A stretch of 64,000 nucleotides of DNA from Macrostomum lignano. Lineage: Eukaryota. The translations under genes and the position numbers were made by a program. The notes beneath the pieces were generated by a model, which saw nothing but the letters and a program-made list of their open reading frames with translations, searched no databases and was not told the DNA's origin. The stretch covers positions 1 to 64,000 of the forward strand of contig NIVC01003166.1 in the NCBI GenBank assembly GCA_002269645.1, given 5' to 3'. Below, one piece after another: positions 17,718-60,452 of the stretch. Position 1 is the stretch's first letter, and each line of letters starts with the position of its first letter.

Positions 17718-18670
17718 ATGCTGACGAACGCCTTGGAAACCTACGCAACTCAGGCCACAACTCACAGCCTTGCGCGACTTGCTGGAAGCAGGCCGGGTTA
17801 TGTAAAAGCTCTCTGGTTGATTGTTTTCCTGACATCACTGACCCTCTGCTCCGTGCGAATCTACGAAACTTATCGAAGCTTCTCGTCTGGCGATTTGAAA
17901 ACTATTGTTCGAGCAAACCAGCTGCTGTTTGAATTTCCCGATATTTACTTGTGCCATCAGAATTCTATTTCAGGCAGCTACTCTGTGACTCTCAATGCTG
18001 CGGACAGTGTCCTGCTCAGCTATTTTCGCCGGCTTGCAAACGACAGCATCTCTGCGCTCAGAATGAGTGGAGACAGAATGCTGGCAGAAAACTACGCCAT
18101 CCGACTGGTGAACACGCTGCCGTATCAGTTTCTGTCGGACAAAATGGGACGCAGAGTCAACCAAATCGTTCCCATCTTTAACTTCAATGGAAAATATCGA
18201 GAAATAGTTCGCATTTTCAGGCATCCATCGTTTCTCAACTGCTTCGCTTTGAATTTAACAGACTCGGACATTCGAATCTTGCAGAGCCCGACCAGCAATA
18301 TTCAACTTGGCGTTTTCCTTGACCCACAGCTGCCAGTTCCATTTGACAACTCCACTGAGCAGGATGTTCAACAGTTTGCTGGAGTTGAGTTCAATCTAAA
18401 GCCGATGCAATGGAGCATAAACTTTGGGTCAGACATGGTAGGCCTAAGCGGATTGCAGCTTTTCATCACGCCAAGAGGCCAGTATCCCAGTGAACTGGAC
18501 GCGACTCTGTCCATAGGATCATCGCAGTACCATCGGCTTTCGATCACGATGTATGACACAGTTTATGACCAAGACCTCAGTCCGAGCAGATGCGCAAAAA
18601 ACGATGAGCTAGTTGATATTGTTGATCCCTACACTTTGAGCAAGAATACTTTCAAGTTTAGCAGCGCTTA
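17718..18670 (+). pseudogene. DEG/ENaC family channel, 5' half (interrupted by Helitron)
   Basis: TTHSLARL, TM1 LWLIVFLTSL, FEFPDIYLCHQN, HPSFLNCFALN, GLQLFITPRGQYP; the frame breaks exactly at the element's CTAG end. Confidence 0.88.
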
Positions 18671-18893
18671 CTAGCAATCTACGCCCCCCGTTGGGGAGCC
18701 AAAGAAATGCAATACACGTTTTTTTAATAAGCTACATGTATCCTTGAAATCTTAAAAAATCTCCTGTCAAACCTTGTAAGCCTTGACATGTCAGTTATCC
18801 CCCCCACAAGCTTTAACATATCAACTTCCCCCCTTGACATCTCAGCAATGCCCCCAATAAGCCTTGGAAATCTAAAAATATCTGTCAACCTTC

Positions 18894-19862: not shown

Positions 19863-20120
19863 ATGAGGCTTCTATGATTTTTTCTTGACGCTTCTATGAT
19901 TTTTACATGATGCTTCTATGATTGTTTACATGACGCTTCTATGATTTTTATATGACGCTTCTACGATTTTTTACATGACGCTTCTATGATTGTTTACATG
20001 ACGCTTCTATGATTGTTTACATGACGCTTCTATGATTTTTTAAATGATGCTTCTATGATTTTGTAAATGACGCTTCTATGATTTTTTAAATGATGCTTCT
20101 ATGATTTTGTAAATGACGCT
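19863..20120. repeat. 23-bp minisatellite (ATGACGCTTCTATGATTGTTTAC) at the point where the Helitron coding sequence is truncated
   Basis: About 11 tandem copies read directly. Confidence 0.9.
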
Positions 20121-23100: not shown

Positions 23101-24509
23101 GCACAGTCCGGGTGGGCAGCTTCACCTTGCCGCCAGCACAGCAGAAATTGCCTGTCTCCATGCGGAACAGCTTGGCACCGCAATGGTTGCATGCCCAGTC
23201 CATTGGCCCGCAGTCATGGGCTGGAGCTTCTGGCCTCGCCATCGTCTCAGGCCTGATAATAAAAATGGAATGTATCTCTTAGTAACTGTTAAATGTAAAT
23301 GTAACTGTTCATTGTGTGTCAGTTTACCTTGCAGTAGCGGGTCCGTCTTCAGCGCGGCCCGCAGTCTCATGTTCCGCCGGCATCGCGCTGGGGCCCTTGG
23401 CCTTTTTGGCCCTCTTGGCAGGAGTTCTGCTTGCTGCCAGGCTTGGGAACTCAGCATCTGTAAAGGCTTGCAAAAGCTCTCGAAGTCTCAGTGACTCGTA
23501 ATGTTCATGGCGCAAAAGCACACGCACAATGGCATTAGGAGGGCGCAAATTAGCCCTGAAATATTGCATCACACTACCATTGGCCTGGTAAATGACCAGA
23601 TCCACATCAAAGCAGCGGCTCAACAAAGAGGCAACTTCATCTGAAACATAAATTCCTGCTTGAAAAGAGGAATTCACGATCTCATCAGCACTCTCAGGTG
23701 CAATGAGGCCATCTGCAATCAGCTGTGGCATGAGTTCTGCAACACGGCAAGACAAGTCCTGCCGCAGGGAGGCTGCGTCAGTTTCCAGCGGGGTTCCACG
23801 CAGCTGATCACACACAGCATAAAAAAAGCAATTGCCATCACCAACAATGGGGATTACCTGCAACTGCTCAAAGGGTACTATAGTTTCTGTACCTTGCTGC
23901 TGGGTGTCCGACCTAAGGGGCAATGGGTGAACGTAAGCACAGCAGCCTTAATTGGCTTTTTAAGACAATTCATTCCTCAAAAATCGTTATCCGCTTAATT
24001 TATACAGAATAAAATAGATACTACAAATTATCCCCTTCAAGGCAATTCAGAAAAAAACAAAAATAAAGACTTGTTATAAAAAGTTACTATACAACTCACC
24101 TAGAAACCACAGCTCCACGGCAACGAATCCGATCGGCTTCCAGTCGGGCAGCCCACTCTGCCTCAGTCTCAGCCTCTCTGCGCTGAGCGTCCCGCTGCCG
24201 CTGTTCTTCCAGTCGGGCAGCCCACTCTGCCTCAGTCTCAGCATCTCTGCGCTGAGCATTCCGCTGCCGCTGTTCTTCCAGTCGGGCAGCTCGCTCTGCC
24301 TCAGTCTCAGCATGTCTGCGCTGAGCATCCCGCTGCCGCTGTTCTTCCAGTCGGGCATCCCGCTCTGCCTCAGTCTCAGCATGTCTGCGCTGAGCATCCC
24401 GCTGCCGCTGTTCTTCCAGTCGGGCATCCCGCTCTGCCTCGGATTCTGCCTGTCGCCGTCGCTTGGCATCGCGGCTCTTCTTTAAACTGCTGGCGCCGCG
24501 TCGAACCAT
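20086..24509 (-). CDS. Helitron Rep protein: STPR-like repeats + OTU cysteine protease + Zn finger + HUH Rep; C-terminal helicase missing
   Basis: Phase-consistent exons 24509-24100, 23912-23328, 23252-22668, 22529-21733, 21475-21133, 20937-20619, 20535-~20113. Motifs: 23-aa AETEAERDARLEEQRQRDAQRRH repeats; GDGNCFFYAV...HEHY; CNHCGAKLF..E...CC..GKV; YNSVL; RYNLPT; LFQQYLVD; SFVGGPRY; PDLFVTATCNPKWPEI; EYQKRGLPHVH; VVPYN; KYVIKYLLKGGD. Confidence 0.92.
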
Positions 24510-25420: not shown

Positions 25421-26071
25421 AGATAATATTTTATTTACGATCATCTTCTTCATCTTCTTCTTCATTGATATTTATCTTCAATCACTACTGGCTGAAATTT
25501 GACGCAGTGCAGAATCGAACCCTAGCCGAGCCTATAACCAATTCCTAGTGCCTACACATCGGCTATCGGCTAGTCTGTTCGCATCTTTCTTGGCTATCTC
25601 TTTTCAATTGGAGAACATGAATTGTGGCCCTTATAATTCAATTCTTACAGCAAGTCAATTGGAGTAAAAAATTATGACATAATCAATTTCTCAGTCAGCC
25701 AGAATCAGTCTCAATTTAAGTTGGCAATATGGTTACGCAATTTCATTCAAGTTTTGTGTGCATTTGTTCGGCACTGTTTTCAACTTGTTGTGATGCAATC
25801 TTTATCACAATCGGAATTCAGTCAGTCAGTTTTTTCTCTAGCATTCTTACAATGCATTTCAGGTCGAAAGAGCTGCTTGACCTTTGCAAAAAATCATGTT
25901 TTTCGAATATTTAATCCCTTTAACATTGAGCAATTTCTTAGCCAATATGCATGTACCGTCCCGGGAAAATTTCTGATCGAATGGTGCAAGTTTGAAGAAA
26001 ATCGGTTGAGCCGTTCGGGAGAAAATCAATTACAAGCAAGCAACCAAGCATTTCATTTTTAGTATATAGGA

Positions 26072-26741
26072 CTGCTGGTACCGAGAAGTCGCCCGACTGT
26101 CAATTGAGCAGTTTAACTGCACCATATGGCGGCTCCCGCTGCCCTGGGAGTATCGCGCAGCGCCATCGTGCTTTAATCTGACCCAAGTTCCTTCTCCTCC
26201 GCAGATCAACCCGACTCTACTCAGACAGCGAGAGGCAGTTTTGTACAATGCGACCGATCTGTGCAGTGGCAAACCGCCCTGCAAGCTGCGGACGTACAGT
26301 TACGCTTACTCTTCTAGCGACTGGCCATCCGATGCGTACTGGAACACCTTTCTTAGAAGCTATATCAGTAGTTTTCTGATCAATAGAAATGGACCAACGC
26401 CCGGATTTTCGTATTTAGTACACAATGCTACTATTGAACAAGTTCGGCAGTCACTGCTTCTCCTGGAACTGTCTGGAGCCGAGTTTAGAAGTCCCGAAGT
26501 TCGCCTGTCACTTGCGTACAGTTTCAATTCGTTGACTGCCGATGTTGGAGGTTTGTTGGGCCTCTTTCTGGGCATGTCACTTTTGTCGGTGCTGGAACTG
26601 CTGGAGCTGCTGCACGACTGTTGCCTGATCCTTGGTAGGCGGCTGCGCCTGCGGCTGCTCAGAAAAGCAGTTGGCGACTCGCCTGAGAAAGAGAGCGGCA
26701 CCGAACCTGGCGAGTTTGGCGAGACGAGTTCGGCCTTCTAG
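26072..26741 (+). pseudogene. DEG/ENaC family channel, 3' half (Cys-rich thumb, TM2, C-tail)
   Basis: CWYREVARLSIEQFNC, CSGKPPCKLRTYSY, SSSDWPS, YSFNSLTADVGGLLGLFLGMSLLSVLE (GxS filter), stop at 26739-26741. Joined to the 5' half it gives 1623 nt, i.e. 540 aa. Confidence 0.9.
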
Positions 26742-28180: not shown

Positions 28181-37316
<9,136 letters not shown>

Positions 37317-38426: not shown

Positions 38427-39043
38427 TTACTGGATATTTTTAATAAAATTAGTATTCAGCATATACAGCTCATAACAGCAGGGTCTTTTCAAGCCGCTGT
38501 ATGATTTATATAATCTTGACCAGGGGTTCATGTCCCATTTCCAAGTTCGAAAGCCGATGTTGAAAATGTCCAAAAGAATCCTTACGAACCGACGGTAGTT
38601 AGATGCTCTGTAAAAGTAGCCGTCCGTGTGCGTCTCAAACAGAAGCTGCTTCACCCTAGCCAGGCAGCCCTCTTGTAAAGCCTGCGCTAGCGAGTCCCAT
38701 TCTGCATATTCGATGTCAATCTTGAGAATGTCGATAGTCGAATTGCCCGGCACAAGTTCCTGAAACAGTTGGCACAGAGAGCGCATCTTCCATCCTTCGG
38801 ATGAGGTTTCATTGTTTGACGACAGACCGATGCTGTAGAACCAGGAACTGTTCTTACGCCTGTGATCCTTCACGCCTAGCATGCTGGGGTCAAACATGAA
38901 CACTCGGCAGCCGAATCTGTCCGCTAACTCGTCATCGTATTCCCAAACGTCATTGATCCCGAACGAGAAGGCGATGCAGCCTTTTGACCGACGAATGTCA
39001 AAGGGCTTGCTGAAGCAGACATCCCAACCGCCATCCTTTATGG
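38427..39043 (-). pseudogene. 5'-truncated duplicate of the METTL24-like methyltransferase C-terminal domain
   Basis: IKDGGWDVC...FSFGINDVWEYDDEL...ILKIDIEYAEW...QLLFETH; the upstream sequence is replaced by satellite at the duplication junction. Confidence 0.85.
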
Positions 39044-39054
39044 TCCTACATGGA

Positions 39055-41206
39055 AAACATAGAAGAGCCACAATGTCAGATATTAAAAAGCCACCGTATC
39101 AAACATAAAAGAGTTACCATGTAGAACAAAAAAGAGCCACCATGTCGAACATAAAAGAGCCACCATGTCAAGCATAAAAGAGCCACCATGTCAAACATTA
39201 AAGAGCCACCATGTCGAACATTAAAGAGCCACCATGTCAAGCATAAAAGAGCCACCATGTCAAACATTAAAGAGCCATGTCAAACACTAAAGAGCCAACA
39301 TGTCGAACATAAAAGAGCCACCATGTCAAACATTAAAGAGCCACCATGTCAGACATTAAAGAGCCACCATGTCAAACATTAAAGAGCCACCATATCGAAC
39401 ACTAAAGAGCCACCATGTCAAACATATGTGACTCCATGTCGAATATATACGTGCCTCCATGTCACACATAAAAGGGCCACCATGTAAAACATATACATAT
39501 GACTACATAACAAACATTAAACAGCCCACCATGTCGAACATTAAAGAGCCATCATGTCAAACATAAAAGAGCCACCATGTCAAACATTAAAGAGCCACCA
39601 TGTCAGACATTAAAGAGCCACTATGTCAAACATAAAAGAGCCACCATGTCAAACATTAAAGAGCCACCATATCGAACACTAAAGAGCCACCATGTCAAAC
39701 ATATGTGACTCCATGTCAAATATATACGTGACTCCATGTCACACATAAAAGAGCCACCATGTAAAACATATACATATGACTACATAACAAACATTAAACA
39801 GCCACCATGTCGAACATTAAAGAGCCATCATGTCAAACATAAAAGAGCCACCATGTCATAAATTAAAGACCCACCATGTCAAACATTAAAGAGCCACCAT
39901 GTCAAACATTAAAGAGCCACCATGTCAAACATTAAAGAGCCACATGTCGAACATAAAAGAGCCACTTTGTCAAACATCTACGAGTCACCATGTCAAGCGT
40001 ATACATGACTCCATTTCAGACATTAAAGTGCCACCATGTCAAACATAAAAGAGCCACCAGCTCAAACATTAAAGAGCCACCATGTCAGACACAAAACAGC
40101 TACCATGTCAAACATAAATGGGGTGCCTACTATCTTGGAGTGCTTGCTATCTGGAGATGCGTGCTATCTGGGGGTGCTTGCTATCTGGGGGATGCTTGCT
40201 ATCTTGGGGGTTCTAGCTATCTGGGGGTGCTTGCTATTAGGTGGATGCTTGCTATCTGGGGTGCCTGCTATCTTGGAGTGCTTGCTATCTGGAGATGCGT
40301 GCTATCTGGGGGTGCTTGCTATCTGGGGTGCTTGCTATCTGGGGGTGCTTGCTATCTGGGGGTGCTTGCTATTAGGTGGATGCTTGCTATCTGGGGTGCC
40401 TGCTATCTGGGGGTTCTTGCTATCTGGGGGTGCTTGCTATCTGGGGGTGCTTGCTATTAGGTGGATGCTTGCTATCTGGGGTGCCTGCTATCTGGGGGTG
40501 CTTGCTATCTGGAGATGCTTGCTATCTGGGGGTGCTTGCTATTAGGTGGATGCTTGCTATCTGGGGGTGCTTGCTATTAGGTGGATGCTTGCTATCTGGG
40601 GGTGCTTGCTATCTGGAGATGCTTGCTATCTGGGGGTGCTTGCTATCTGGGGGTGCTTGCTATCTAAGGGTGCTTGCTATTAGGTGGATGCTTGCTATCT
40701 TGGGGTGCTTGCTATTAGGTGGATGCTTGCTATCTGGGGTGCCTGCTATCTGGGGGTGCTTGCTATCTAGAGATGCTTGCTACTTGGGGTGCTTGCTATC
40801 TGGGGGTGCTTGCTATCTGGGGGTGCTTGCTATCTAAGGGTGCTTGCTATTAGGTGGATGCTTGCTATCTTGGGGTGCTTGCTATTAGGTGGATGCTTGC
40901 TATCTGGGGTGCCTGCTATCTGGGGGTGCTTGCTATCTGGAGATGCTTGCCTTGCTATCCAAGGGTGCTTGCTATCTGGGGATGCTTGCTATCTAAGGGT
41001 GCTTGCTATTAGGTGGATGCTTGCTATCTGGGGGTGCTTGCTATCTGGGGGGTTGCTTGCTGTCCTGGGATATTTTTTTGCATTGCACTTCATTTGAGCA
41101 GTTTTTCTATTGTCTATGTGAAGGCTTTATTTGGCCGTCTTTTTGATACTTGTAGAGTGCCAGAGATTCTATCTAGATGCCCCCCATCGGGGGCGAAGAT
41201 TGCTAG
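39055..41206 (+). mobile_element. Duplicated 3' part of the non-autonomous Helitron
   Basis: Same satellites and the hairpin-GATTG-CTAG|T end at 41203-41206. Confidence 0.85.
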
Positions 41207-41229: not shown

Positions 41230-44109
<2,880 letters not shown>

Positions 44110-45219: not shown

Positions 45220-47004
45220 TTACTGGATATTTTTAATAAAATTAGTATTCAGCATATACAGCTCATAACAGCAGGGTCTTTTCAAGCCGCTGTATGATTT
45301 ATATAATCTTGACCAGGGGTTCATGTCCCATTTCCAAGTTCGAAAGCCGATGTTGAAAATGTCCAAAAGAATCCTTACGAACCGACGGTAGTTAGATGCT
45401 CTGTAAAAGTAGCCGTCCGTGTGCGTCTCAAACAGAAGCTGCTTCACCCTAGCCAGGCAGCCCTCTTGTAAAGCCTGCGCTAGCGAGTCCCATTCTGCAT
45501 ATTCGATGTCAATCTTGAGAATGTCGATAGTCGAATTGCCCGGCACAAGTTCCTGAAACAGTTGGCACAGAGAGCGCATCTTCCATCCTTCGGATGAGGT
45601 TTCATTGTTTGACGACAGACCGATGCTGTAGAACCAGGAACTGTTCTTACGCCTGTGATCCTTCACGCCTAGCATGCTGGGGTCAAACATGAACACTCGG
45701 CAGCCGAATCTGTCCGCTAACTCGTCATCGTATTACCAAACGTCATTGATCCCGAACGAGAAGGCGATGCAGCCTTTTGACCGACGAATGTCAAAGGGCT
45801 TGCTGAAGCAGACATCCCAACCGCCATCCTTTATGGACCCGATTCGCTTGCTATTAGGGCAGAAGATATGCTGCTGCTCTACTAGCTGATAGTACAGATA
45901 TTCCAATTGGGTCTGAGACATGGCAGCGAGGTTAGCTCGGAGTGCTACACGAATTTGATCACAGTGCTGTCCTTTGAAAATTGGATCATTCTTCAGAGGA
46001 AAGTCAATAAAGCTTCCAATGTCGTTCGTCAGTTTGATATTGGCAGAGTGGCTGCTTAGGAAATTGACGTTAATGTAGCTTAGGTGCACTATACTGGCAC
46101 CTATTGAGGTGTTTGCTTTAAGTGCACTTACATTCCATTGTCGAAATCCAACACTTTTCAGTTCCATCAGAGCACGAATATTTCTTTGAAGCTCGTCAGA
46201 CGTCGGAGACTTTGTTACGTCGAATTCAATATTCAAGAGTAGCTGCTTTGTTAGTCCCAGCGAACCGTCAGTCGCGGCAGTTTTCAGCAGTGAAAAATTT
46301 CCTGACTGGATGTCGATTTTCAACACGTCGATCACTGATTTATCGGCTTTGAAGCGCTTTAGGTAGCCGAGATAAGTGTTGGTACCGACAATGTCGTTAG
46401 TAGTGAAGTTACCTAGACCCTCTCTGAGCAGTAGAATGCGTTCACTGTGCAGTCGACTAGATCGCGTCATTTTCGGGTAAAATGACAATACATAGCAGCC
46501 ATGAACTGTGGAGAAGTGTTCTTCGAATACTGGAGACGTCACATTTTCGCTGAATGAGAAGACGTAGCAAGGCTGAGTTGGACTGTATTGGCCCGCCGTG
46601 CACACGTTGTAGCCAGTGGTATTTTTACCGTTTTTAACCATTGCAGTCTGGTTATTGTCGTGACAGAGCTCCGTTGACTGCTTCAGCATCTGCTTGAGCA
46701 TATTTTCCAACTCTGGTTTTGTTTTGCTTTGCAGTTGGTGTCGAGCCATGTCAACATTCCAGAGCCATTGCGCAGGTGTTCCTAAGGATAAAAAGCTGCT
46801 CCCTGGTTTACGTGTTAAAGTTTCGGAAGTTTGTGTATATTGGCTCAATTGAGCAACGAACTTACTGGATCCACTGCGTAGAATTACAGTTTTTATACTT
46901 ATTACAGTCAGCATTGCAATTATAAATCCGATGGTTATTCTTTTTAAGCATGTCGTACTTTGAAAACAGCCGGGCCTCCTCCATTCGACCAGAAGCAGAT
47001 GCAT
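45220..47004 (-). CDS. Intronless type II membrane protein with two tandem METTL24/FkbM-like methyltransferase domains; in-frame TAA at 45733-45735
   Basis: N-terminal TM ITIGFIIAMLTVISI. Domain 1: YNVC...CYVFSFS...IDVLKIDIQ...TKQLLL. Domain 2: RIGSIKDGGWDVC...CIAFSFGI...MFDPS...LKIDIEYAEW...KQLLFETH. The ORFs 45733-47004 and 45220-45696 are in one frame across the stop. Confidence 0.8.
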
Positions 47005-48299
47005 CGTGCGCGATTTTGTCTGACTGAGACAATCCGATTGCTTATTTAATTTACGTTTAATGGGCGCCTTCGCAGCAAGGAATCAATAGTCTATGGTACA
47101 ACTACTTTCGTACCGGGACCAATATATCATTTAATGGTCTTCAAACGGAGCCCAATAAATGATTTATTGGTCGTGGGAAAAGAAAAGTTGTACCATAAGA
47201 AATTTGTATCTAATTTCGCAAATAGAAAATGAGAAAAACGGAATACAAATAACGCATAACTCATGCTTCTTCTTAATAGTTTTCTATGCTAGCTTCAAGA
47301 AAGTCTGCACGCACTCAACAGGCAGGATTTCAATTTTATAGGACCGTCAATGATGATAGACTTCACTCCGTGTGCTTTAGAGGACTCACAAGACTCATCG
47401 GTTTTTGAGCACAGAAGTGTACGCTAGCAAAAGATTGTCTATGGCAGCTGTGTATGGCAAAGCTTGGCAGAAAAGCTAGCGTACACTTCTGTGCTCAATA
47501 ACTCGCCTCTGGAGCAATTTTTCGCAACCAAATGTTTGTGGGAAAAACTTACAAATGTTTACTGTGGACCTGTTAAATTTCTGTGCTATAGGCCTAACTG
47601 CTCACTCACAGTGAGCGCACAAAGTGTTACCTTTTTTTGGGACACCCGTTATGTGTAGTCTCTGGCCCGAAGAAAAGACTCAGTGTAAAAGTAGAAGCTG
47701 CACTTTGTACTTCAACTGCAGAAATAGCAATGGATAAATAATCAGCGGTCCCAGTGCGTGACAACGATTGAGACTTGAGTTTATTTGAGTCTGTTGAGAC
47801 TCTTGAGTCTGTTTAGACTCTACTGGTTGCAGTCTCTAGAAGGACTGCCCCTGATAGGTCTTAGAGGACTATCAGAGGTTTCCGGAGCTATACCTAGAGT
47901 GCATAGAGGCACTGCTAGAAGAAGGAGGCTTAATTCAGACCGCAGTTTGGCGCAGGGATCCCATTGTTAATGATCTGAAGCTTCCTATTGGTCCGAGCGA
48001 CAGAATCCGGCCGGAACTATTTGAAGAAGGAAAGAAGACTCGGACCCGACCTACGAACGACAATCAGAAGTGACTACAAACGAGATCTACACGAGATCCA
48101 CATTGAAGAAATATCTCATAAGGACTCAAGGTAATTGAATACCTTCTGTTGACTTACTGGGTTGCCTAGCTACTGAGCTAGAAGTGATTGTTCTTTGATT
48201 ATCGAAAGTCGGGTAATAAGGAACACATCATTACAACAAAAATAGTGAAAAGAAGATAGAATAGAAACAATATAATATTAATATTTGATTACACCTGTC

Positions 48300-49625: not shown

Positions 49626-52600
49626 ATGAGTTGTCCTGCCATGCAGCTGACGTCATGCAGCATTCAGTTCAGCAAGCTGGGCGACCCGCTGATGTCGCTC
49701 GATTTTGCGTCCAACGAGGCGCAGACGGCGTCCACTGTTACAGTTTACAATCGAAAGTCGTTCGGCATGCAAACCAAAGTCTGCGATGCTCCCCTGCCAA
49801 AAAGTGGCAGTTCGTCCTCGAATGAGTTGAAGAGCCTGCTTCATCAAATATTGACCACGGTTGAGTCTTTCAGAACAGAGATGGGCTTCGACAAAGACTT
49901 TCACGGCAAAGCGGCTGCTCATCCTGAGCAGGGCATGCTAGCATTCCACTTCTCCCAAGACCCATCATCTGCGGAGGCCCCGAATCAGCCAGTCTGGAAT
50001 GAGGCCTGGACTCGAACCCCTAGAGCCGATTTTCCCTCGAAAATCGAAGTGACTAGCGGTGAATTCGGACATCAATTCGTGTTTCGAGCGGGTAAAATGC
50101 TGACGGAGCTTAGAAGAAAGGTAGTTAACAAATGTCATTTGTATTTTTTACTGGCAAAATATATATTTGATAATTTAGATGGTTCTCATGGACATAGTCA
50201 CCCAATTTATAAATGGCATAGGTTTCCAGGGTCACTGGCATGAGCACAGTCACCCAGCTGTTAATGGCATAGGTATCCAGGTCACTGGCATGAGCACAGT
50301 CACCCCATCTGTTAATGGCATAGGTATCCAAGGTCACTGGCATGAGCACAGTCACCCCATCTGTTAATGGCATAGGTATCCAAGGTCACTGGCATGAGCA
50401 CAGTCACCCCATCTGTTAATGGCATAGGTATCCAAGGTCACTGGCATGAGCACAGTCACCCCATCTGTTAATGGCATAGGTATCCAAGGTCACTGGCATG
50501 AGCACAGTCACATAGAGATTTCGATGACATGAGTGTGTACAAGCACATGCAGCGTCATATTGTTTTCATTTCAACACTGCTCCAAAAAACGTCCCGTTGA
50601 ACAGCGCAACAACCGGGAGACCTTGATGATCACTGATGTTAACGGCGTTAACAGTACCGGCGACGAAGAAATTTTCGACGCCATCGACAGTGAAATATCG
50701 GATAGCCATCGAGTGTGCTTCGGCGTTCGCTGGACAGCCAGAACTGGCCGTCTGCGCGTTGTCTGCTGGCTGCATCCTGAGTGGCCGGAGCAGCGACTGG
50801 CACGAGCTGGACCGCATTACAGCGCCTGGCTGCGCAGTCGAATGAGGAAGGCCGCTGTTAACAACTATCTGTGCGTATTGGACGATTTCGTTGGAGAACG
50901 AAACCAGAGTAATTCAAATGATGTCGCGGAGGCTGTACTGGCAGAAGCTGACGGCAGAGGAGAAGGTAAGTTTACACTGAGTTAGCGAGGTAACTTGGTA
51001 CTTCTCGGTCCCTCGGTCACAGTCATATCGAGATTTTGATGACGTAAGTGAGTGTGTACAAGTACATGTAGCACACGTCTAGCTTTCTTTGATGTAAAAC
51101 TTCGAAGTTCACATAGGGCTTTGACCACTGTCGCAAATTACGAAATGGACAGTTGACCCGAGAGAAAGGTAGAAAGTAAGCGAGTTAGTCAGACCGATTC
51201 CACCGACCTCACAGCACTCAAACGGATACGTGCGCAGGAACACACTAACGCAGGACACTTGTCTTGAGGGTTTAGCTCGCGTGCCCCTAAGTAAATCATA
51301 AGGCAACCCTTGATTTATTTTCGGGCACAACGTCTAAATCCAGGACAGTTCAATGCGAGAGTCAGACGCTTTACCGCTGATGTTCTCTGGCCCTACGAAG
51401 TTAATATAGCACTCGGTTTCTTACTTTTTCCAGACTGCCCGCTATTTTTCTTGGCCGTGGAGTCGCACAGTTTCACCGTGGCAGATTGGCTCCTCGAATA
51501 CAGAAAAAAACTGCTCCGACAAGAAGACGACAGGATCGAAGTTGTTACCATTCAAGCGATTGACGCCTACAATAAATGGGGCGACACGGCGCTAACGCGT
51601 TGTTGCGGTCGCGGCGGTGATCCAAAAGTCATCAATTACTTGCTGTCCAGAGGCTGCGATCGGCTTCATCAGACAGACATCACCGGTAACACCGCTATGC
51701 ACCGGCTCGCCGCATCAATTCCGTCAACTGCCGACGGTCAGACTGTGGTTCGGCCGGTGCTCAACGCCCTGCTGAATGGATTGTCGGTCGATCTGCTCAC
51801 GGAGTGGCTTGCCAAAGAGAACCACGCAGGGGAGCGAGCGGCGGCTTTAGTTTCCAATGCCGCTATGCTGGATGCTCTGTTGGAGGCGTTGGAAATTCCA
51901 ATGGCCAGGTGACGAAGTTAAATTATTGTATTCTTGCTTTTGTTTAACTTGCACCGACCAGCCTGTTTACAAGATTTTAGACTATTTTGGGGAAATAACG
52001 CACCAACCATACTAGAATTTGTGTCACAATCCAAACTACAGTTTGTGTCACCATCAAAACTACAGTTTGTGTCACCATCCAAACTACAGTTTGTGTCACC
52101 ATCCAAACTACAGTTTGTGTCACCATCCAAACTACAGTTTGTGTCACCATCCAAACTACAGTTTGTGTCACCATCCAAATTACAGTTTGTGTCACCATCC
52201 AAACTACAGTTTGTTTCACCATCCAAATTACAGTTGGTGTCACCATCCAAATTATAGTTTGTGTCACCATCCAAATTACAGTTTGTGTCACCATCCAAAT
52301 TACAGTTTGTGTCACTATCCAAATTACAGTTGGTGTCATCATCCAAATTACAGTTGGTGTCACCATCCAAATTACAGTTGGTGTCACCATCCAAATTACA
52401 GTTTGTTTCACCATCCAAACTACAGTTTGTTTCACAATCAAAACTACAGTTTGTGTCACCATCCAAACTACAGTTTGTGCCACCACCCAAATTACAGTTT
52501 GTTTCACCATCTAAACTACAGTTTGTGTCACAATCTACACTTTAGTTGTGTCACCATCCAAACTACAGTTTGTGCCACCACCCAAATTACAGTTTGTTTC

Positions 52601-55600
52601 ACCATCTAAACTAGAGTTTGTGTCACAATCTACACTTTAGTTTTGTCACAATCCAAACTACAGTTTTTGTCACAATCTACACTACAGTTTGTGTCACAAT
52701 CTACACTACAGTTGTGTCACAATCCAAACTACAGTTTTTGTCACAATCTACACTACAGTTTGTGTCACAATCTACACTACAGTTGTGTCACAATCCAAAC
52801 TACCGTTTGTGTCACAATCCAAACTACAGTTTGTGTCACAATCTACACTACAGTTGTGTCACAATCCAAACTACAATTTGTGTCACCTTTCAGTTTATAT
52901 TGTGTCACCCCTCAGAGGGCAGTTTGTGACTGTCGCCATGCAATACGTGTCGCCATTTAGTGATGACCTTCTGTCTCCCCAACCTACATGTATGCAGCGC
53001 TCAGAGCCACCAATCCGGGACACTCGGCAGGCCCAAACTCGACTGCCAGCTGCTGTTTCGCTCGGCCAGCGGCTCCAGCATCGGGCACAGTCTAGCAGCT
53101 TTCGGCAGTCTTGAAGCCGTCGAGCCGGTGGTCACTGGCCGGTTGGGCGTGGAAACTTGGAAAGAACTGCTGTGCGGCAACTGCCAGTTCGGCTACACGC
53201 CGATGCACGCAGCCTGTCAGACTGGGAAATGGTCCAACGTTGCCTACCTGATGCAGGAAATGATCCTGCCTCCGCCGCCTCCGTCTGCGCTGGACTTGGC
53301 TATCAGAGAGCGTCAGCTTATCACCTATAAACAGTTTAACAATTTTGCCGATTGCATGAAGACTGGGTCGAATATTTGCACCGAATCAGCTGATATGAGC
53401 TGCTCTGATGCTGAGGCCGTAGCTTTAACCATTTTGGATCGAGCAGAAGACTGCCTTGTGGCTGCGGATCAGGAGAATGGTAATCTACCTTCTATAATGC
53501 GAGTTGGCGAGGTAGCTCAGCTTATGTATCGGCTTATCTATCAGCTGGTGCCTCAGAAATATTTGACTTGATCACGGTTTCTTAGAAAATCTTTTAATCC
53601 CAGACAGGTGTCTCCACAACAGGCAGGCATCCTAAACAGTTTTTTGAGACATGTGCCCCTGACAGGTATCAGAGACAGGTGTCACAGACCGGTATCACAG
53701 ACAGGTGTCACAGACAGGTGTCACAGACAGGTGTCACAGACAGGTGTCACAGACAGGTGTCACAGACAGGTGTCACAGACAGGTGTCACAGACAGGTGTC
53801 ACAGACAGGTGTCACAGACAGGTGTCACAGACAGGTGTCACAGACAGGTGTCACAGACAGGTGTCACAGACAGGTGTCACAGACAGGTGTCACAGACAGG
53901 TGTCACAGACAGGTGTCACAGACAGGTGTCACAGACAGGTGTCACAGACAGGTGTCACAGACAGGTGTCACAGACAGGTGTCACAGACAGGTGTCACAGA
54001 CAGGTGTCACAGACAGGTGTCACAGACAGGTGTCACAGACAGGTGTCACAGACAGGTGTCACAGACAGGTGTCACAGACAGGTGTCACAGACAGGTGTCA
54101 CAGACAGGTGTCACAGACAGGTGTCACAGACAGGTGTCACAGACAGGTGTCACAGACAGGTGTCACAGACAGGTGTCACAGACAGGTGTCACAGACAGGT
54201 GTCACAGACAGGTGTCACAGACAGGTGTCACAGACAGGTGTCACAGACAGGTGTCACAGACAGGTGTCACAGACAGGTGTCACAGACAGGTGTCACAGAC
54301 AGGTGTCACAGACAGGTGTCACAGACAGGTGTCACAGACAGGTGTCACAGACAGGTGTCACAGACAGGTGTCACAGACAGGTGTCACAGACAGGTGTCAC
54401 AGACAGGTGTCACAGACAGGTGTCACAGACAGGTGTCACAGACAGGTGTCACAGGCAGGTGTCACAGACAGGTGTCACAGGCAGGTGTAACAGACAGGTG
54501 TCTCAGTCGTACAACGTTCTTCCCTACCCAACGCTATCCAGACAAAACTGAGGCGGCCAACTTTCGCCTCCAGTGGTCCATGGCCGCCCTGGCAACCACA
54601 GCGTCGTCTGCTTTTAGCGACGACGCCAGCAGAGACCCGGTCCTCGGCTGCGTTCAAGCGGCCCTCCGGGACGGGTCGGCAGCGCCGCTGCGGGGTCTGA
54701 TTCGCGGCAGCGGCTCGGACGACAGCTCGGGATTGGGCCTGGCGCTTCAGGTTTGCTGATTAAATTGTTGATTAAAATTTAAACTAGCGATTGCATACTA
54801 CTGACGAGTAGGGGCATCGAGATTGGGCGTTGATCCTTTTTTGCATGTGAAAAATTGCAAACTGACATAACTAGTTTTCTTATGGAATTATTTCTTGACG
54901 CTTGCATCAACAGACGAGTCTGTAATGAGCTTGAGACAGTAAAGATTCCGCAGGACAAGTTCTGGACAATCGCGACTTCTCAATTTGTTTGGAACGGGCA
55001 TTGGGAGCACAAAGAGCACAAAGCGAGGAGAAATGAAAGGGAAGAGAGAAGAGAAAGGAGAGGGGACATGAAGGACGCAGAGGGCGCAGAGGGCGCAGAG
55101 GGCGCAGAGGGCGCGGAGGGCGCGGAGGGCGCAGAAAAAAGGACACAGAGGACACATTGGACGCAGAGGAGAGGACACAGGAGAGGACACAGAGGACGCA
55201 GAGGACACAGAGGACGCAGAGGACACAAAGGAGAGAGCACAGGAGACACAGAGAAGAGGACACAGAGGACGCAGAGGACACAGAGGACGCAGAGGACACA
55301 GAGGAGAAAGCACAGGAGACACAGAGGAGAGAACACAGGACGCAGAGGACACAGAGGACACAGAGGAGAGAGCACAAGAGACACAGAGAAGAGGACACAG
55401 AGGACACAGAGGAGAGAGCACAGGGGACACAGAGAAGAGGACACAGAGGACGCAGAGGACACAGAGGAGAGAGCACAGGAGACACAGAGAAGAGGACACA
55501 GAGGACGCAGAGGACACAGAGGACGCAGAGGACACAGAGGAGAGAGCACATGAGACACAGAGGAGAGAGCACAGGAGACACAGAGGAGAGAGCACAGGAG

Positions 55601-58600
55601 ACACAGAGGAGAGAGCACAGGAGACACAGAGAAGAGAACACAGGACGCAGAGGACACAGAGGAGAGAGCACAGGAGACACAGAGGAGAGAGCACAGGAGA
55701 CACAGAGAAGAGAACACAGGACGCAGAGGACACAGAGGAGAGAGCACAGGAGACACAGAGGAGAGAGCACAGGAGACACAGAGAAGAGAACACAGGACGC
55801 AGAGGACACAGAGGAGAGAGCACAGGACGCAGAGGACACAGAGGACACAGAGGAGAGAGCACAGGAGACACAGAGAAGAGAACACAGGACGCAGAGGACA
55901 CAGAGGACACAGAGGAGAGAACACAGGACGCAGAGGACACAGAGGAGAGAGCACAGGAGACACAGAGAAGAGAACACAGGACGCAGAAGACACAAAACTT
56001 GCATTTCTTGCAGGCCCTGGAGTCGCAGCCGCACCAACTGCTCAAACTCACTCTGCCGGGCGAGAATCTCACTTGTCCAGGGAGTCTGGACGGCCTTCTC
56101 GGCCTGGCACTTCGGCGGAAGAAGTGGCAGCTGGCGGGCGAGCTGCTGCCGGCTCGCCAGTTCGACCTGCTGCCAGCCTGCCTGGGCATCATGCTGACCC
56201 TGCGGCTGCGACAGGCGGACCTGCTGCAGCAGTCAGACGAGAGTCAGGCAGCTGCGCTACTTGGCAGCAGTTCCAGACGACGGGGCAGCGCTGTTGATGT
56301 TGAACTCCCGTTTGAACTGGCAGAGGTGAGGCACCATTTGAGCGCAGGAGACCACTTTTAAATTGTAAGAAAACCCATTTGGTTTCAATCCTTGGTTACG
56401 TTTCATTCATAACTGCTCGCCTAATCTCAAAAAACTCTTTCAAGGCTCTCTACAGTCAGGCAAAGCAGGTGTTCTGCACGGCGCTCCAGCGGCTCTACAG
56501 GGGCGCCATCACGGAGGCGCACAAAGGCCTGGTGTTCAACTATCTCGGCGGTCGGTTTCACGGCGGTGACAGCTCAGGCAGGGGACCGTTATTCTGTCCG
56601 GACGTGATTCGCGGCGATAGCGACGGCAGCGACGGTCGGTGCCTTTTCGACCTCATGCTGCTAACGCACGAGCCGGAGCTGCTGGCTCTGCCCTGCGCCA
56701 CAGACTACGTCGACCTGCTGCTGGCCAGCCCGCGAACCTTCTGCTGTCATCTGTGCCGCGACAGCCACGGCGACCGGCGCTTGGAAGGCCCGAGTTGCAG
56801 CTCCGGCCCGGTTCGAATCATCTCGAGCCTCTGGCCGGAACGTGGCGACCGGCTGCGGCGACGTCTGCCAAATGGCTGCACTCCGCAGGTCAGCATGCTT
56901 GTTTGCGCGCTCTTCAATGCCGCCTTTCTCTGCCTGCTTGGCTTCTACGTGTACGAGGTGAGGAAATTACCGGCTTAACTTGGTGAAATAGATGGTCAGG
57001 GAGGTGGACTGAAGAAGAAGAGGTTCTGAGGGATACGATGACCGAGCAGACACGATGACCGAGCAGACACGATGACCGAGCAGACACGATGACCGAGCAG
57101 ACACGATGACCGAGCAGACACGATGACCGAGCAGACACGATGACCGAGCAGACACGATGACCGAGCAGACACGATGACCGAGTAGACACGATGACCGAGC
57201 AGACACGATGACCGAGCAGACACGATGACCGAGCAGACACGATGACCGAGCAGACACGATGACCGAGCAGACACGATGACCGAGCAGACACGATGACCGA
57301 GCAGACACGATGACCGAGCAGACACGATGACCGAGCAGACACGATGACCGAGCAGACACGATGACCGAGCAGACACGATGACCGAGCAGACACGATGACC
57401 GAGCAGACACGATGACCGAGCAGACACGATGACCGAACAGACTCGAATACGTGTCAAAATTACATACTAAACTTTCGAAAACCAACCTGCTAATTCCTCA
57501 GGTGGGAGAACCGAGATCTCACGGCGCAATGATGTTTTTGAAGCTGCTACTCCTGTTCTGCGGCCTGTCCTACTCTGTCCAAGAGTTGCAGGACGTTCGA
57601 TCCGTAAAATTCGTGCCGGGTTATAAATCGATGAGCTTTTGCAAGCGACTGTCCTGGTACCTGTCCTACAGATGGAACCTAGTGGACATTGCAGCCATGG
57701 CATTTCTACTGATTGGATTAATTTGGATCATTGTACTGGACGCTACAACCGTATCGTATAAAGAAACCACCAACGGCTTGTCGTACTACTTTGCCAGGTA
57801 AAAACTACTTTGTTGATTACCAACCGCCAACCGCAACTTGAGATTAGAAACACCAATTAGCAACATCACAGTCAGATTAGCAACCCTGCTTTGAGATTAG
57901 CAACCTTCCTAAGCGCATGACGCGTATTCACCTGAAGCATAGCAACACCGCATCTGCATCCTCCAGGCTATTTTTAGCTGTGTCATTCATCTTCTACTGT
58001 ATGCGGATGCTGTCCAGTCTTGGTTATTTCGAACGTCTCGGCCTCTACATCAGCATCACTAAGACGACAATTATGATGGACGTCATTCCGTTTCTGATTG
58101 TCAATGCGTTTTTTCTCGCATCGTTTGGTATATTGATTGTGTGCCTGCTGTTTCCCAGCGGGCACACCTACGTGCAAGGTAAGCGATGATCTATCTGAAT
58201 TATACACCTGTAAAATGTAGGAATACACCTGTAAAATGCAGGAATACACCTGTAAAATTTAAGAGTACACCTCTAAAATGTAGGAATACACCTGTAAAAT
58301 GCAGGAATACACCTGTAAAATTTAAGAGTACACCTCTAAAATGTAGGAATACACCTGTAAAATAAAGGAATACACCTGTAAAATGTAGGAATACACCTCT
58401 AAAATGTAGGAATACACCTGTAAAATATAGGAATACACCTGTAAAATGTAGGAATACACCTGTAAAATGTAGGAATACACCTGTAAAACGTAGGAATACA
58501 CCTGTAAAATGCAGGAATACACCTTTAAAATGTAGAATACACCTGTAAAATGCAGGAATACACCTGTAAAATGTAGGAATACACCTGTAAAATGCAGGAA

Positions 58601-60452
58601 TACACCTTTAAAATGTAGGAATACACCTGTAAAATGTAGGAATACACCTGTAAAATGTAGGAATACACCTGTAAAATGTAGGAATACGCCTGCAAAATGT
58701 GGGAATACACCTGTAAAATGTAGGAATACACCTGTAAAATGCAGGAATACACCTTAAAATGTAGAAATTCACCTGTAAAATGTAGGAATTCACCTGTAAA
58801 ATGTAACAGGTGCATTCAACCAGTAAAATGTAAGAAGACACCCATTACACTTGTCAAATATAGAAACAAACCTGCGTCTTTCAAGAAGCATTCTTCGAAT
58901 TCTTGAACCAAAACAGGCAACAACTACGAGAACCCAACTCGATCGGAGATGCTATCAACCGGCTCCTACATCACCGAGGTGTTCCAGCGCCCTCTGCTCG
59001 CCCATTTCGGCGAGTTTGGCATGGACTGGCTGCGCCAGTGCCAGCGCGATCCGCCCAATTCTGGTCAGGAGTCAGAAAGAAACTGCCCTCATCCGCTTGG
59101 CAACAAAATCTATACCCGAGCAGTTCTGTTCGTCTATCTGCTCATCATTAGCATAGTGCTCATCAATGTGCTCATCGCAAAGCTCAGCCTGACAGTTGGC
59201 AAAGAAGACGAACGAGCTCGCGTCATCTGGAGAAGTTTCCGGGCCCAGCTGCTGGCCGAGTTCGGCGGAGAAATTAGCTCGACGCCGCCGATTCTGCTGG
59301 CCATCGCCTGGATTGCGACGTCCCCCGCCAGGCTGTGGAGATGCTGCACGTCTAGGAGGTCCCCAACTGCCGACTCGGTTGGGGGCGCCGCAGCTGCACA
59401 AGGGCACAACGATGTCAACGGAGGTGCTTCAGCTGTTACTGCGACTGCAACAGCTTCCAGTGAAGACTATTCGTACAACATCACGAGTGACACGGTTATG
59501 ACCACTGTAGTGGCCAAAGGTTCTCAGGGAAGCCTGCTATCGGAGGCTGAGAAAGCCGAACTGGGCGGAGCTGATGAGGTGAGTTCCTCCATGCCACCAG
59601 TAGTTGCCGGAGACTGTGCGATTGCGTTTCTGCTTGCTCCTCGGGAGCTCGAAGGTGGATAGGTGGCTCAGTAACTTGAGATCTAGGTCGTTTGGGAGGC
59701 TGGCCCAGCAACTGAGGGTCTGTAAGAGGCTGGCCCAGCAACTAAGGATCTGAGAAACTAATCCAGCAACTGAGGATCTGGGAGGCTGGCCCAGCAACTG
59801 ACACTATGGGAGGCTGGTGGCCCAGCAACTGAGGATCTGGGAGGCTGTTGGTCCAGCAATTTTTGAGGATCTAGGAGGCTGGCCCAGCAACTGAGGATCT
59901 GGGAGGCTGGCCCAGCAACTGGAGGATCTGGGAGGCTGGTAGCCTAGCAAATGGGGGATCTGGGAGGCTGGCCCAGCAACTGAGGATCTGGGAGGCTAGC
60001 CCAGCAACTGAGGATCTAGGAGGCTGGCCCAGCAACTGAGGATCTGGGAGGCTGGCATAGCAACTGAGGATCTGAGAGGCTGGCCCAGCAACTGGGGATC
60101 TGGGAGGCTGGTAGCCTAGCAAATGGGGGATCTGGGAGGCTGGCCCAGCAACTGGGGGATCTGGGAGGCTGGTGGCCCAGTAACTGGGGTATCTGGGAGG
60201 CTGGTAGCCCAGCAACTGGGGGATCTGGGAGGCTGGCCCAGCAACTGGGGGATCTTGGATGCGGTTTCGTGATAAAAAGCAAACTCCTTATCTTTTAAAC
60301 CACCTCAGAGGAGCAGCGCAGCCCTGCCCTGGTGGCAGGTTGCTCACGGCAACAATCGCATGGCGCCGAAAGATTTCCGCGAGTTTCTCTGGTTCCAGTC
60401 GATGCAGTTCAGAACAGTGCGACAAAAGTTCGCCATAGCCAGCCGCAATTGA
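49626..60452 (+). CDS. TRP channel with ankyrin repeats and a TRPM-like linker, TM region and TRP box (11 exons)
   Basis: Phase-consistent exons 49626-50120, 50605-50965, 51434-51908, 52998-53479, 54542-54750, 56014-56325, 56460-56957, 57502-57797, 57967-58178, 58917-59578, 60309-60452. Ankyrin motifs WGDTALTRCC, GNTAMHRLA, GYTPMHAAC; WNLVDIAA; RLGLYISI...DVIPFL; FQRPLLAHFGEF; VLINVLIAKL; WRSFRAQLLAEF..TPPIL. Confidence 0.85.
50197..50510. repeat. ~51-bp minisatellite, ~6 copies (TRP intron 1)
   Basis: GTCACTGGCATGAGCACAGTCACCCCATCTGTTAATGGCATAGGTATCCAAG read directly. Confidence 0.92.
52018..52887. repeat. 24-bp minisatellite GTGTCACCATCCAAACTACAGTTT (TRP intron 3)
   Basis: Read directly; shifts to a CACAATCTACAC variant in the 3' half. 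Confidence 0.95.
53661..54503. repeat. 13-bp near-perfect minisatellite GACAGGTGTCACA, ~64 copies (TRP intron 4)
   Basis: Read directly. Confidence 0.97.
55070..55992. repeat. Purine-rich compound repeat GAGGACACA/GAGGACGCA/GAGAGCACAG (TRP intron 5)
   Basis: Read directly. Confidence 0.93.
57035..57442. repeat. 17-bp minisatellite ACGATGACCGAGCAGAC, ~24 copies (TRP intron 7)
   Basis: Read directly. Confidence 0.97.
58202..58830. repeat. 21-bp minisatellite AATACACCTGTAAAATGTAGG, ~29 copies (TRP intron 9)
   Basis: Read directly. Confidence 0.95.
59695..60257. repeat. ~28-bp minisatellite GAGGATCTGGGAGGCTGGCCCAGCAACT (TRP intron 10)
   Basis: Read directly. Confidence 0.93.

Follow-up and report, generated by a model that had tools for sequence, protein, structure and literature searches.

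TRPM_MCLZ (Smp_333650), the target of meclonazepam, was described by the Marchant laboratory in work published between 2023 and 2026 as a TRPM-like channel that carries N-terminal ankyrin repeats and has no MHR1/2-SLOG region (PMC10788528, PMC11731825, PMC12861061). Here we analyze a gene of the free-living flatworm Macrostomum lignano that has the same layout. It lies on the forward strand of contig NIVC01003166.1, in a stretch of 64,000 nucleotides (positions 1 to 64,000; the window), and occupies positions 49626-60452. A preliminary description of this DNA had proposed a candidate new architecture, in which ankyrin repeats are fused to a TRPM-type body. The combination of ankyrin repeats with a TRPM-like channel lacking SLOG is, however, already published for TRPM_MCLZ, and at least 22 more M. 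lignano protein clusters share it, so that the locus adds a member to a family and not an architecture. The accompanying premise that TRPM channels lack ankyrins was too strong. TRPM_MCLZ has them, and divergent ankyrin repeats have been reported in MHR3/MHR4 of ordinary TRPMs, according to the citation of Burroughs 2015 in PMC13143021.

The locus is likely, in our view, a single M. lignano gene for a subunit of a tetrameric, non-selective cation channel that is TRPM-like and belongs to the ankyrin-type group of flatworms, in which TRPM_MCLZ is the one characterised member. The protein has about five ankyrin repeats in the place of SLOG/MHR1-2, followed by an MHR4-like linker, the transmembrane helices S1-S6, a TRP helix with its 'PP' segment and a C-terminal motif. 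With a match to TRPM4 at 1.4e-14 and matches to paralogues down to 1e-34, these features lie well beyond chance, exons 1-2 excepted.

The gene model and its integrity

The exon model was built from stop-to-stop frames combined with inspection of splice sites. It comprises 11 exons with GT-AG borders on the + strand, spliced in phase into a single open reading frame of 1359 amino acids (aa). The ATG at 49626 and the stop codon at 60450-60452 are exactly the start and end of the gene as previously delimited. The earlier assertion that all splice phases chain correctly holds, and the nine peptide motifs quoted with it are all present on the + strand in the expected places.

Exon 1 (49626-50120, aa 1-165) is putative; it begins with the ATG, is open throughout to a phase-0 donor AAG/gtagtt, and has its top codon-usage score in the modelled frame. 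Exon 2 (50605-50965, aa 166-285), likewise putative, ends in a perfect phase-1 donor AAG/gtaagt that pairs with the acceptor tttttccag of exon 3, and the codon-usage frame test agrees. Ankyrin repeats 1-4 are encoded by exon 3 (51434-51908, aa 286-443), with the motifs CPLFFLAVES, GDTALTRCC (51580-51606), GNTAMHRLA (51685-51711) and GERAAALVS. The last repeat, GYTPMHAAC (53191-53217; family motif GATCLHFACEAG), lies in exon 4 (53079-53511, aa 444-588) together with linker sequence, and exon 5 (54574-54750, aa 589-647), which is flanked by phase-0 junctions on both sides, carries further linker with the family motif A..DS...LRxL (AALRDGSAAPLRGL). The MHR4-like linker domain is divided between exon 6 (56014-56325, aa 648-751; first half, LLGLALRRKKWQLAGELLPARQFDLLPACL) and exon 7 (56445-56957, aa 752-922), the latter also containing the pre-S1 region and S1 (56889-56945); the strings previously called MHR-like fall at 56095-56900. 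Exon 8 (57502-57797, aa 923-1020) encodes S2 (57523-57579) with Y946, E950 and D953, S3 (57679-57735) with N981 and D984, and the start of S4. The remainder of S4, including R1034, is in exon 9 (57967-58178, aa 1021-1091), with the S4-S5 linker and S5 (58094-58150). Exon 10 (58917-59578, aa 1092-1312) provides the pore helix and filter FQRPLLAHFGEF (58982-59017, the position of the pore string quoted earlier), S6 (59120-59176), and at 59222-59299 the TRP helix and PP segment VIWRSFRAQLLAEF...STPPILL, after which comes a low-complexity tail. Exon 11 (60309-60452, aa 1313-1359 and stop) contains the C-terminal family motif DFREFLWFQSMQFR (60375-60413). The open frame at 54834-55010 (FFACEKLQTD...), a candidate for an additional exon, was rejected, as it is without homology and unnecessary for the phase.

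Membership of exons 1-2 in the gene is uncertain; it is based on the open frame, the splice signals and codon usage, the test of which is weak and partly circular. A start codon requires exon 2 at least, and the junction signals of this exon are near-perfect; its internal ATG (MITDVNG...) could be the true start.

A long tandem array lies in seven of the ten introns, a different one in each (50196-50511, 52001-52887, 53661-54506, 55140-55994, 57035-57446, 58202-58805 and 59693-60259), with units of 52, 24, 13, about 9-76 (purine-rich), 17, 21 and 28 nt, present in up to 65 copies with up to 98% identity. Because of these arrays many spurious long open frames occur across the region in several frames.

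The closest database proteins are M. lignano entries. UniProt A0A1I8GH42 (P0001, 695 aa), found at 97% identity, is a partial model that starts exactly at exon 6 and has the same stop as ours. It matches exons 6-11 except that it skips 16 residues (ILIVCLLFPSGHTYVQ, window 58131-58178) that complete S5; our model retains the complete S5 because it uses the consensus donor AAG/gtaagc at 58178. The other close matches derive from paralogous or homeologous copies; they are short predictions, in part frame-shifted, and together join exons 3-4, 4-5 and 5-6 (P0007 and P0008 join exons 4 and 5, and P0002 joins exons 5 and 6). A word-indexed protein search with the concatenated exons returned only two self-like Macrostomum fragments, its candidate list being filled by low-complexity and ankyrin words, and with a 13-sequence family alignment it returned only generic ankyrin proteins. 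Exact look-up of P0001 and P0002 in a contig index gave no match. The locus thereby gains a corrected full-length gene model to replace an incomplete database entry.

The gene might be a non-functional or unexpressed duplicate, that is, a young pseudogene of an ankyrin-type TRPM-like gene. The M. lignano genome contains many near-identical and divergent copies, tandem arrays fill seven of the ten introns, and for this gene the searches returned no 'BOX15_Mlig' protein, while many paralogues have one. We nevertheless think this unlikely. Every one of the 11 exons is open, in phase and bordered by canonical splice sites, and shows the codon-usage signal of its frame. Residues that are critical for function and invariant in the family (E950, N981, R1034, W1196 and E1206) are intact, as are the glycines and prolines of S4-S6. 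In an alignment of 34 family sequences W1196 is invariant, E1206 near-invariant, and E950 and N981 are conserved at 90% or more.

The ankyrin and channel exons most likely form one gene, as had been proposed, judging from the collinearity of relatives from ankyrin exons to TRP helix. The intronless 1537-aa open reading frame P0012 is matched in a single BLAST high-scoring segment pair that begins at the ankyrin repeat of exon 4 and ends past the TRP helix (query 482-1241, E 1.6e-34), P0038 likewise (query 484-1241), and the M. lignano paralogue P0021 in one segment from exon 3 to exon 7 (query 324-841) and a second over the channel (query 972-1217). The 13-sequence family alignment has invariant or near-invariant residues in the same order as the exons, namely KGATCLHFAC in exon 4 (an invariant A and near-invariant L and H columns), A..DS...LRxL in exon 5 (near-invariant columns A332, S337 and R342), RQFDLIP in exon 6 and LFATDC...W in exon 7. 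The motif of exon 11 recurs as YP..Y..FL.FQA.Q.R in the consensus of Macrostomum paralogues and as FL..Q.F.L..RR in TRPM_MCLZ orthologues.

The same evidence bears on whether the locus might hold two neighbouring genes that are in phase by chance, exons 1-5 encoding an ankyrin-repeat protein and exons 6-11 an N-terminally short TRPM-like channel. M. lignano uses spliced-leader trans-splicing, and the two could therefore be neighbours in an operon-like unit. A0A1I8GH42 begins exactly at exon 6, the predictions P0004, P0007 and P0008 terminate where exon 5 does, the 1.26 kb of intron 5 are filled with purine-rich repeat, and two large databases yielded no full-length protein for the gene. Yet the homologous segments lie in one polypeptide in relatives (from exon 4 to the TRP domain in P0012 and from exon 3 to exon 7 in P0021), and in every paralogue the invariant residues of exon 5 come after the last ankyrin repeat and before the RQFD motif. 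In addition the paralogue model P0002 joins exons 5 and 6, both junctions of exon 5 are phase 0 with a good acceptor tttcttgcag, and a channel starting at exon 6 would have neither start codon context nor an N-terminal domain. We therefore judge two genes to be slightly less probable even than a pseudogene.

Domains of the encoded protein

Ankyrin motifs had been read in exons 3 and 4, and several kinds of evidence agree. Pfam matches exon 3 with Ank_4 (3e-6), Ank_2 (4e-5) and Ank (1e-4), and exon 4 weakly with Ank (6e-3). The best matches of the N-terminal half among PDB sequences are DARPins (6e-4). An AlphaFold2 model has about five helix-pair repeats over aa 287-506, with a predicted local distance difference test (pLDDT) score of 70-90 for the helix pairs of exon 3.

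The absence of a recognisable SLOG-like MHR1/2, also noted previously, was confirmed by two methods. The SLOG/LSDAT family (Pfam LSDAT_euk, PF18139) has no match on any exon translation at E up to 1, and a phmmer search with the SLOG domain of P0044, a canonical TRPM2-like protein, matched ten other proteins and not that of the window; P0044 itself scores 2e-26 for LSDAT. The gene might in principle encode an ordinary TRPM whose SLOG/MHR1-2 exons were missed upstream or have diverged too far within exons 1-2. The 286 aa of those exons are without recognised content, and SLOG domains can be very divergent. This seems most improbable in view of the two negative searches and of the closest relatives and TRPM_MCLZ, which are also without SLOG and have ankyrins in that position. 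Moreover an FkbM-type methyltransferase gene on the minus strand (45223-47082) lies directly upstream, which leaves little room for missed SLOG exons.

Exons 6-7 had been likened to MHR3/4 of TRPM channels. The likeness to MHR4 stands, as a remote one, but MHR3 (the first half of PF25508) was not detected in the window protein. PF25508, a TRPM2-like domain, has no direct Pfam match on the protein. An iterated profile was seeded with window aa 660-880 and one paralogue and scored at Z=1e6. In round 1 it reached TRPM_MCLZ orthologues of E. multilocularis, Taenia, Sparganum and Calicophoron (7e-5 to 5e-4), in round 2 the whole Macrostomum group, in round 3 a second Macrostomum group, and in round 4 the MHR4 segment of SLOG-bearing TRPMs (P0044 715-949, 3e-10). 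When the subgroup of the window protein alone was compared with canonical TRPMs alone, hhalign gave E=1e-3 with a probability of 22% over 125 collinear columns, pairing LALRRKKWQLAGELL with WALLVGKLQMAELFW and LLALPCATDYVDLLL with FMAHPCCQDFLTGAW; the exon 7 motif CLFDLMLLTHEPELLALPCATDYVDLLL lines up with the TRPM MHR4 motif ending in FMAHPCCQDFLTGAW. These domain-level alignments were used in place of long, gappy full-length ones, for which hhalign gave only E=0.25. The paralogue P0016 matches PF25508 directly (1e-11) between its ankyrins and its channel. The profile and the alignments thus point to a remote homology of exons 6-7 with TRPM MHR4.

The channel body resembles TRPM above all other TRP families. 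Pfam on single exon translations detects neither Ion_trans nor PF25508, so assignment of the transmembrane domain rests on comparison with PDB sequences and with paralogues. A phmmer search of P0001 against all PDB sequences gave only TRPM chains at the top, led by TRPM4 at 1.4e-14 and continuing with TRPM2, TRPM1, TRPM5, TRPM8 and TRPM3 to 1e-6. Next came Chlamydomonas TRP1 (crTRP1, 0.013), NOMPC (0.019) and TRPV3 (0.09), and the best 60 of 103 matches (E up to 10) included neither TRPC nor TRPA. The TRPM4 alignment extends from the S2-S3 loop to the TRP helix (P0001 313-578), pairs VIWRSFRAQLLAEF with YWKAQRYRLIREF of TRPM4 in the TRP helix, and covers both the pore string and the TRP-box/PP segment, which had been called TRPM-like with good reason. 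Identity to canonical TRPMs in the transmembrane domain is 24-27%. Six hydropathy peaks over aa 900-1178 correspond to S1-S6, and S5 and S6 are separated by a pore loop.

An AlphaFold2 model of aa 287-1241, computed with 34 relatives, has a mean pLDDT of 74.3 and a predicted TM-score (pTM) of 0.60, and its helices correspond to S1-S6; a run with TRPM_MCLZ orthologues alone as the alignment gave a pLDDT of 42 and was discarded. When the model was compared with the PDB using Foldseek, ranks 1-49 were all TRPM (TRPM4, TRPM3, TRPM5, TRPM2 and TRPM8) with 660-1000 aligned columns and a TM-score of 0.60 for the best target; there was no TRPC in the top 50, and NOMPC was rank 50. A profile search likewise places the transmembrane domain closest to TRPM among TRP families. 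The preliminary description had named grouping of this region with TRPC, TRPN or TRPA as what would refute its reading; by all three approaches the grouping is with TRPM.

That the protein is a divergent member of TRPC, TRPN, TRPA or TRPV with a superficial likeness to TRPM is hardly credible, for although N-terminal ankyrin repeats, a helical linker and a TRP helix with a PP segment are also the TRPC layout, and NOMPC appears weakly in both the sequence (0.019) and fold (rank 50) searches, twelve orders of magnitude separate TRPM from the best non-TRPM match in the PDB, Foldseek ranks 1-49 are TRPM with no TRPC in the top 50, and the linker matches TRPM MHR4 (by PF25508 in paralogue P0016, by profile and by hhalign).

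The S1-S4 cavity of the window protein keeps Y946, E950, D953, N981, D984, R1034 and E1206. Of these, E950 (S2), N981 (S3), R1034 (S4) and E1206 (TRP helix) are conserved family-wide, and D953 and D984 are present in the window protein. On the basis of established TRPM4/2/5/8 structures, we take the cavity residues to correspond to the Ca2+ site and the adjacent ligand cavity of the S1-S4 domain in these channels, as in TRPM_PZQ and TRPM_MCLZ. The filter contains FGE, which we presume to resemble that of the divalent-permeable TRPM1/3/6/7 type; this suggests that the channel may be permeable to divalent cations. Because the cavity residues are conserved, gating is probably driven or tuned by cytosolic Ca2+ or by small ligands bound in the S1-S4 cavity. 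The same cavity is used by menthol, praziquantel and meclonazepam (PMC12861061). The ankyrin domain could serve subunit packing or contacts with partners, in replacement of nucleotide sensing by SLOG.

Relation to TRPM_MCLZ and other relatives

HMMER, run exhaustively on 1.84 billion representatives, returned 140 matches. After self fragments, the best were long proteins in which ankyrin repeats are N-terminal and the channel C-terminal, followed by trematode and cestode proteins, with SLOG-bearing TRPMs appearing only from about 1e-12. The trematode and cestode proteins can be identified as the TRPM_MCLZ family because both accessions and residue numbering agree. P0185 and P0215 are CAH8438365.1 and CAH8481013.1, accessions named in PMC10788528, and the schistosome cluster has H827, H831, Y864, E868, R943, H946, Y1038 and Y1117 at the exact published positions. 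In M. lignano at least 22 further protein clusters of this layout are annotated 'ANK_REP_REGION' and/or 'Ion transport domain-containing'.

The meclonazepam-activated TRPM_MCLZ (S. mansoni Smp_333650 / A0A5K4FCC0, with trematode, cestode and monogenean orthologues) shares with the window protein the ankyrins, the absence of SLOG/MHR1-2, an MHR4-like linker with the motif RQFD(L/V)(L/I)PA, TRPM-type S1-S6, the TRP helix with its PP segment and the C-terminal FL..Q.F.L. Aligned with 14 TRPM_MCLZ orthologues, the window protein is collinear over about 950 residues at 22-26% identity. Invariant positions of this alignment include R409-Q410-F411-D412, Y660, E664, R748 and W910, to which 286 is added for protein numbering (the last four being Y946, E950, R1034 and W1196).

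There are also clear differences. Y864, E868 and R943 of TRPM_MCLZ are kept as Y946, E950 and R1034, whereas Y1117 becomes F1207, and H827, H831, H946 and the pore residue Y1038 become C905, N909, S1037 and L1119. The pocket residues H827, H831, Y864, E868, R943 and Y1117 are highly conserved across 63 TRPM_MCLZ orthologues (PMC12861061). Since H827, H831, H946 and Y1038 are replaced, sensitivity to meclonazepam would not be anticipated, and the window protein is expected to be insensitive. The filter is FGE in the window protein and FE(V/A)S in TRPM_MCLZ; the gene has 11 exons in comparison with three reported for Sm.TRPM_MCLZ, and its host is a free-living flatworm in contrast to the parasitic hosts of TRPM_MCLZ.

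A neighbor-joining bootstrap tree of 80 transmembrane domains, in which deep nodes are poorly supported, places the window protein in a Macrostomum-dominated subgroup with P0011 and P0017 (67% bootstrap). The TRPM_MCLZ core (100%) pairs with a second Macrostomum subgroup containing P0016, P0026 and others (44%). Sequence and tree together point to distant paralogy with TRPM_MCLZ inside one architectural family, not to orthology.

The best non-self matches are M. lignano paralogues of the same layout (among them PAA71352.1 = P0021, PAA72794.1 = P0011, PAA89802.1 = P0013 and A0A1I8GVB8 = P0017), with E 1e-30 to 1e-20 and 25-33% identity in the best matches (20-33% for the paralogues), and the gene is part of a large Macrostomum expansion. 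Common motifs are KGATCLHFAC, ELDS..LRS, TRQFDLIP, LFATDC, IWR....L.E(Y/F)...LPPP and YP..Y..FL.FQA. Most of these paralogues have far longer ankyrin arrays, of up to about 1000 aa, whereas the window protein has about five repeats and an unrelated N-terminus of 286 aa.

Outside the group, canonical TRPM4/2/5/8/3/1 share the transmembrane domain, pore helix, S6, TRP helix, PP segment, MHR4-like linker and predicted fold, together with the Ca2+-site residues of the voltage-sensor-like domain (E950, N981, D984 and E1206 in the window protein), but in place of their SLOG/MHR1-2 the window protein has recognisable ankyrin repeats. No NUDT9H, kinase or long coiled-coil C-terminus was detected in the window protein, and the exon 10 translation has no NUDIX match. 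TRPS (soromelastatin), with a SLOG N-terminus, a Nudix-linked C-terminus and no ankyrins (PMC7306681), is the opposite of the window protein on SLOG and ankyrins. TRPC and TRPN (NOMPC) have N-terminal ankyrin repeats, a helical linker and a TRP helix, but their similarity in the transmembrane domain is negligible (NOMPC E=0.019 and Foldseek rank 50; TRPC absent).

P0012 (MEE4247282.1, 1537 aa), encoded on a 5106-bp marine metagenome contig, is among the best non-Macrostomum relatives (6e-25 in the exhaustive search, 1.6e-34 by BLAST). Its deposited name is 'MAG: hypothetical protein [Kangiellaceae bacterium]', and IMG lists it as 'ankyrin repeat protein'. The contig is almost certainly eukaryotic (animal) and mis-binned into a bacterial metagenome-assembled genome. 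Two TRPM_MCLZ-type protein models of Opisthorchis viverrini (P0014 and P0146, 1906 and 2059 aa) contain two complete channel bodies in tandem, with the S4 and TRP motifs present twice. This suggests either a tandem duplication fused by the gene predictor or the trematode duplicated exon noted in PMC12861061.

Several points weigh against our interpretation of the gene as one channel subunit of the ankyrin-type group. Database searches found no homologue of exons 1-2 (aa 1-286), and exon 2 has no Pfam match. No full-length protein for the gene was found in two large protein databases, where the best models stop at exon 6 or are fragmentary, and it is from homology that we infer co-transcription of the ankyrin and channel exons. 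What is said above of gating and permeation derives from conserved residues. The window protein keeps three of the eight published pocket or pore residues of TRPM_MCLZ and has lost both S1 histidines, and grouping with TRPM_MCLZ is weakly supported in the tree, the clade of 25 of the 26 ankyrin-bearing channels having 10% bootstrap and including the SLOG-bearing fragment P0112. Lastly, M. lignano is highly duplicated and the gene may be a silent copy, though its reading frame is intact.

Surroundings of the gene and evolutionary meaning

The window contains two further ion-channel genes on the same strand, which makes three unrelated ones in all. Another member of the TRP superfamily, a polycystin (TRPP/PKD2-like) gene at 2627-4333 (+), matches Pfam Polycystin_dom (6e-20), PKD_channel (2e-17) and Ion_trans (1e-11), and likely has further exons at 2-541 and 1287-2227. 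A DEG/ENaC gene (amiloride-sensitive sodium channel, Pfam ASC) has two large exons at 17712-18671 and 26070-26738 (+), covering profile positions 1-297 and 299-455. A Helitron-like element at about 20089-23947 (-), with Helitron_like_N at 21680-22558 (4e-46) and long adjoining open reading frames, lies between the two ASC exons and probably inside an intron of that gene. There is also a segmental duplication of about 7 kb within the window. It is seen as an identical 149-aa open reading frame at 36867-37313 and 43660-44106 (+), an FkbM-type methyltransferase exon at 38430-39098 repeated at 45223-45732 (-), and (CTGT)n-type microsatellites at 36460-36830 and 43250-43630. The methyltransferase copy at 45223-47082 is the immediate upstream neighbour of the TRP gene, on the opposite strand.

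The large, pan-metazoan phylogenies of TRPM and TRPS (Himmel 2020; Morini 2026) took in no Platyhelminthes, and an ankyrin-free TRPM lineage was therefore concluded without flatworms. A tentative possibility, which we hold with considerable doubt, is that the ankyrin-type TRPM-like channels are no peculiarity of parasites but form an old lineage, earlier in origin than Neodermata and possibly than flatworms, and that the window gene belongs to a second, Macrostomum-expanded subfamily within it. This subfamily would comprise at least 15 clusters at 50% identity, and its S1-S4 pocket differs from that of TRPM_MCLZ. The lineage would have retained canonical ankyrin repeats where TRPM and TRPS have SLOG and a degenerate MHR3. 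It could be older than flatworms because an intronless member is found on a marine metagenome contig mislabelled as bacterial. If the lineage does branch outside TRPM and TRPS, this would contradict an 'ankyrin-free, SLOG-linked TRPM-TRPS ancestor' (Himmel et al. 2020), and the lineage would offer an intermediate for the origin of the melastatin N-terminus.

Only two TRP channels are validated drug targets in parasitic flatworms. TRPM_MCLZ is one of them, and the literature on it that we found does not discuss it outside parasites. The same layout is present in more than 20 divergent clusters of a free-living, early-branching flatworm. Because M. lignano carries it, the ankyrin-type TRPM-like family would predate parasitism. 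M. lignano is amenable to transgenesis and RNA interference, and is a tractable model in which to ask what ankyrin-type channels sense.

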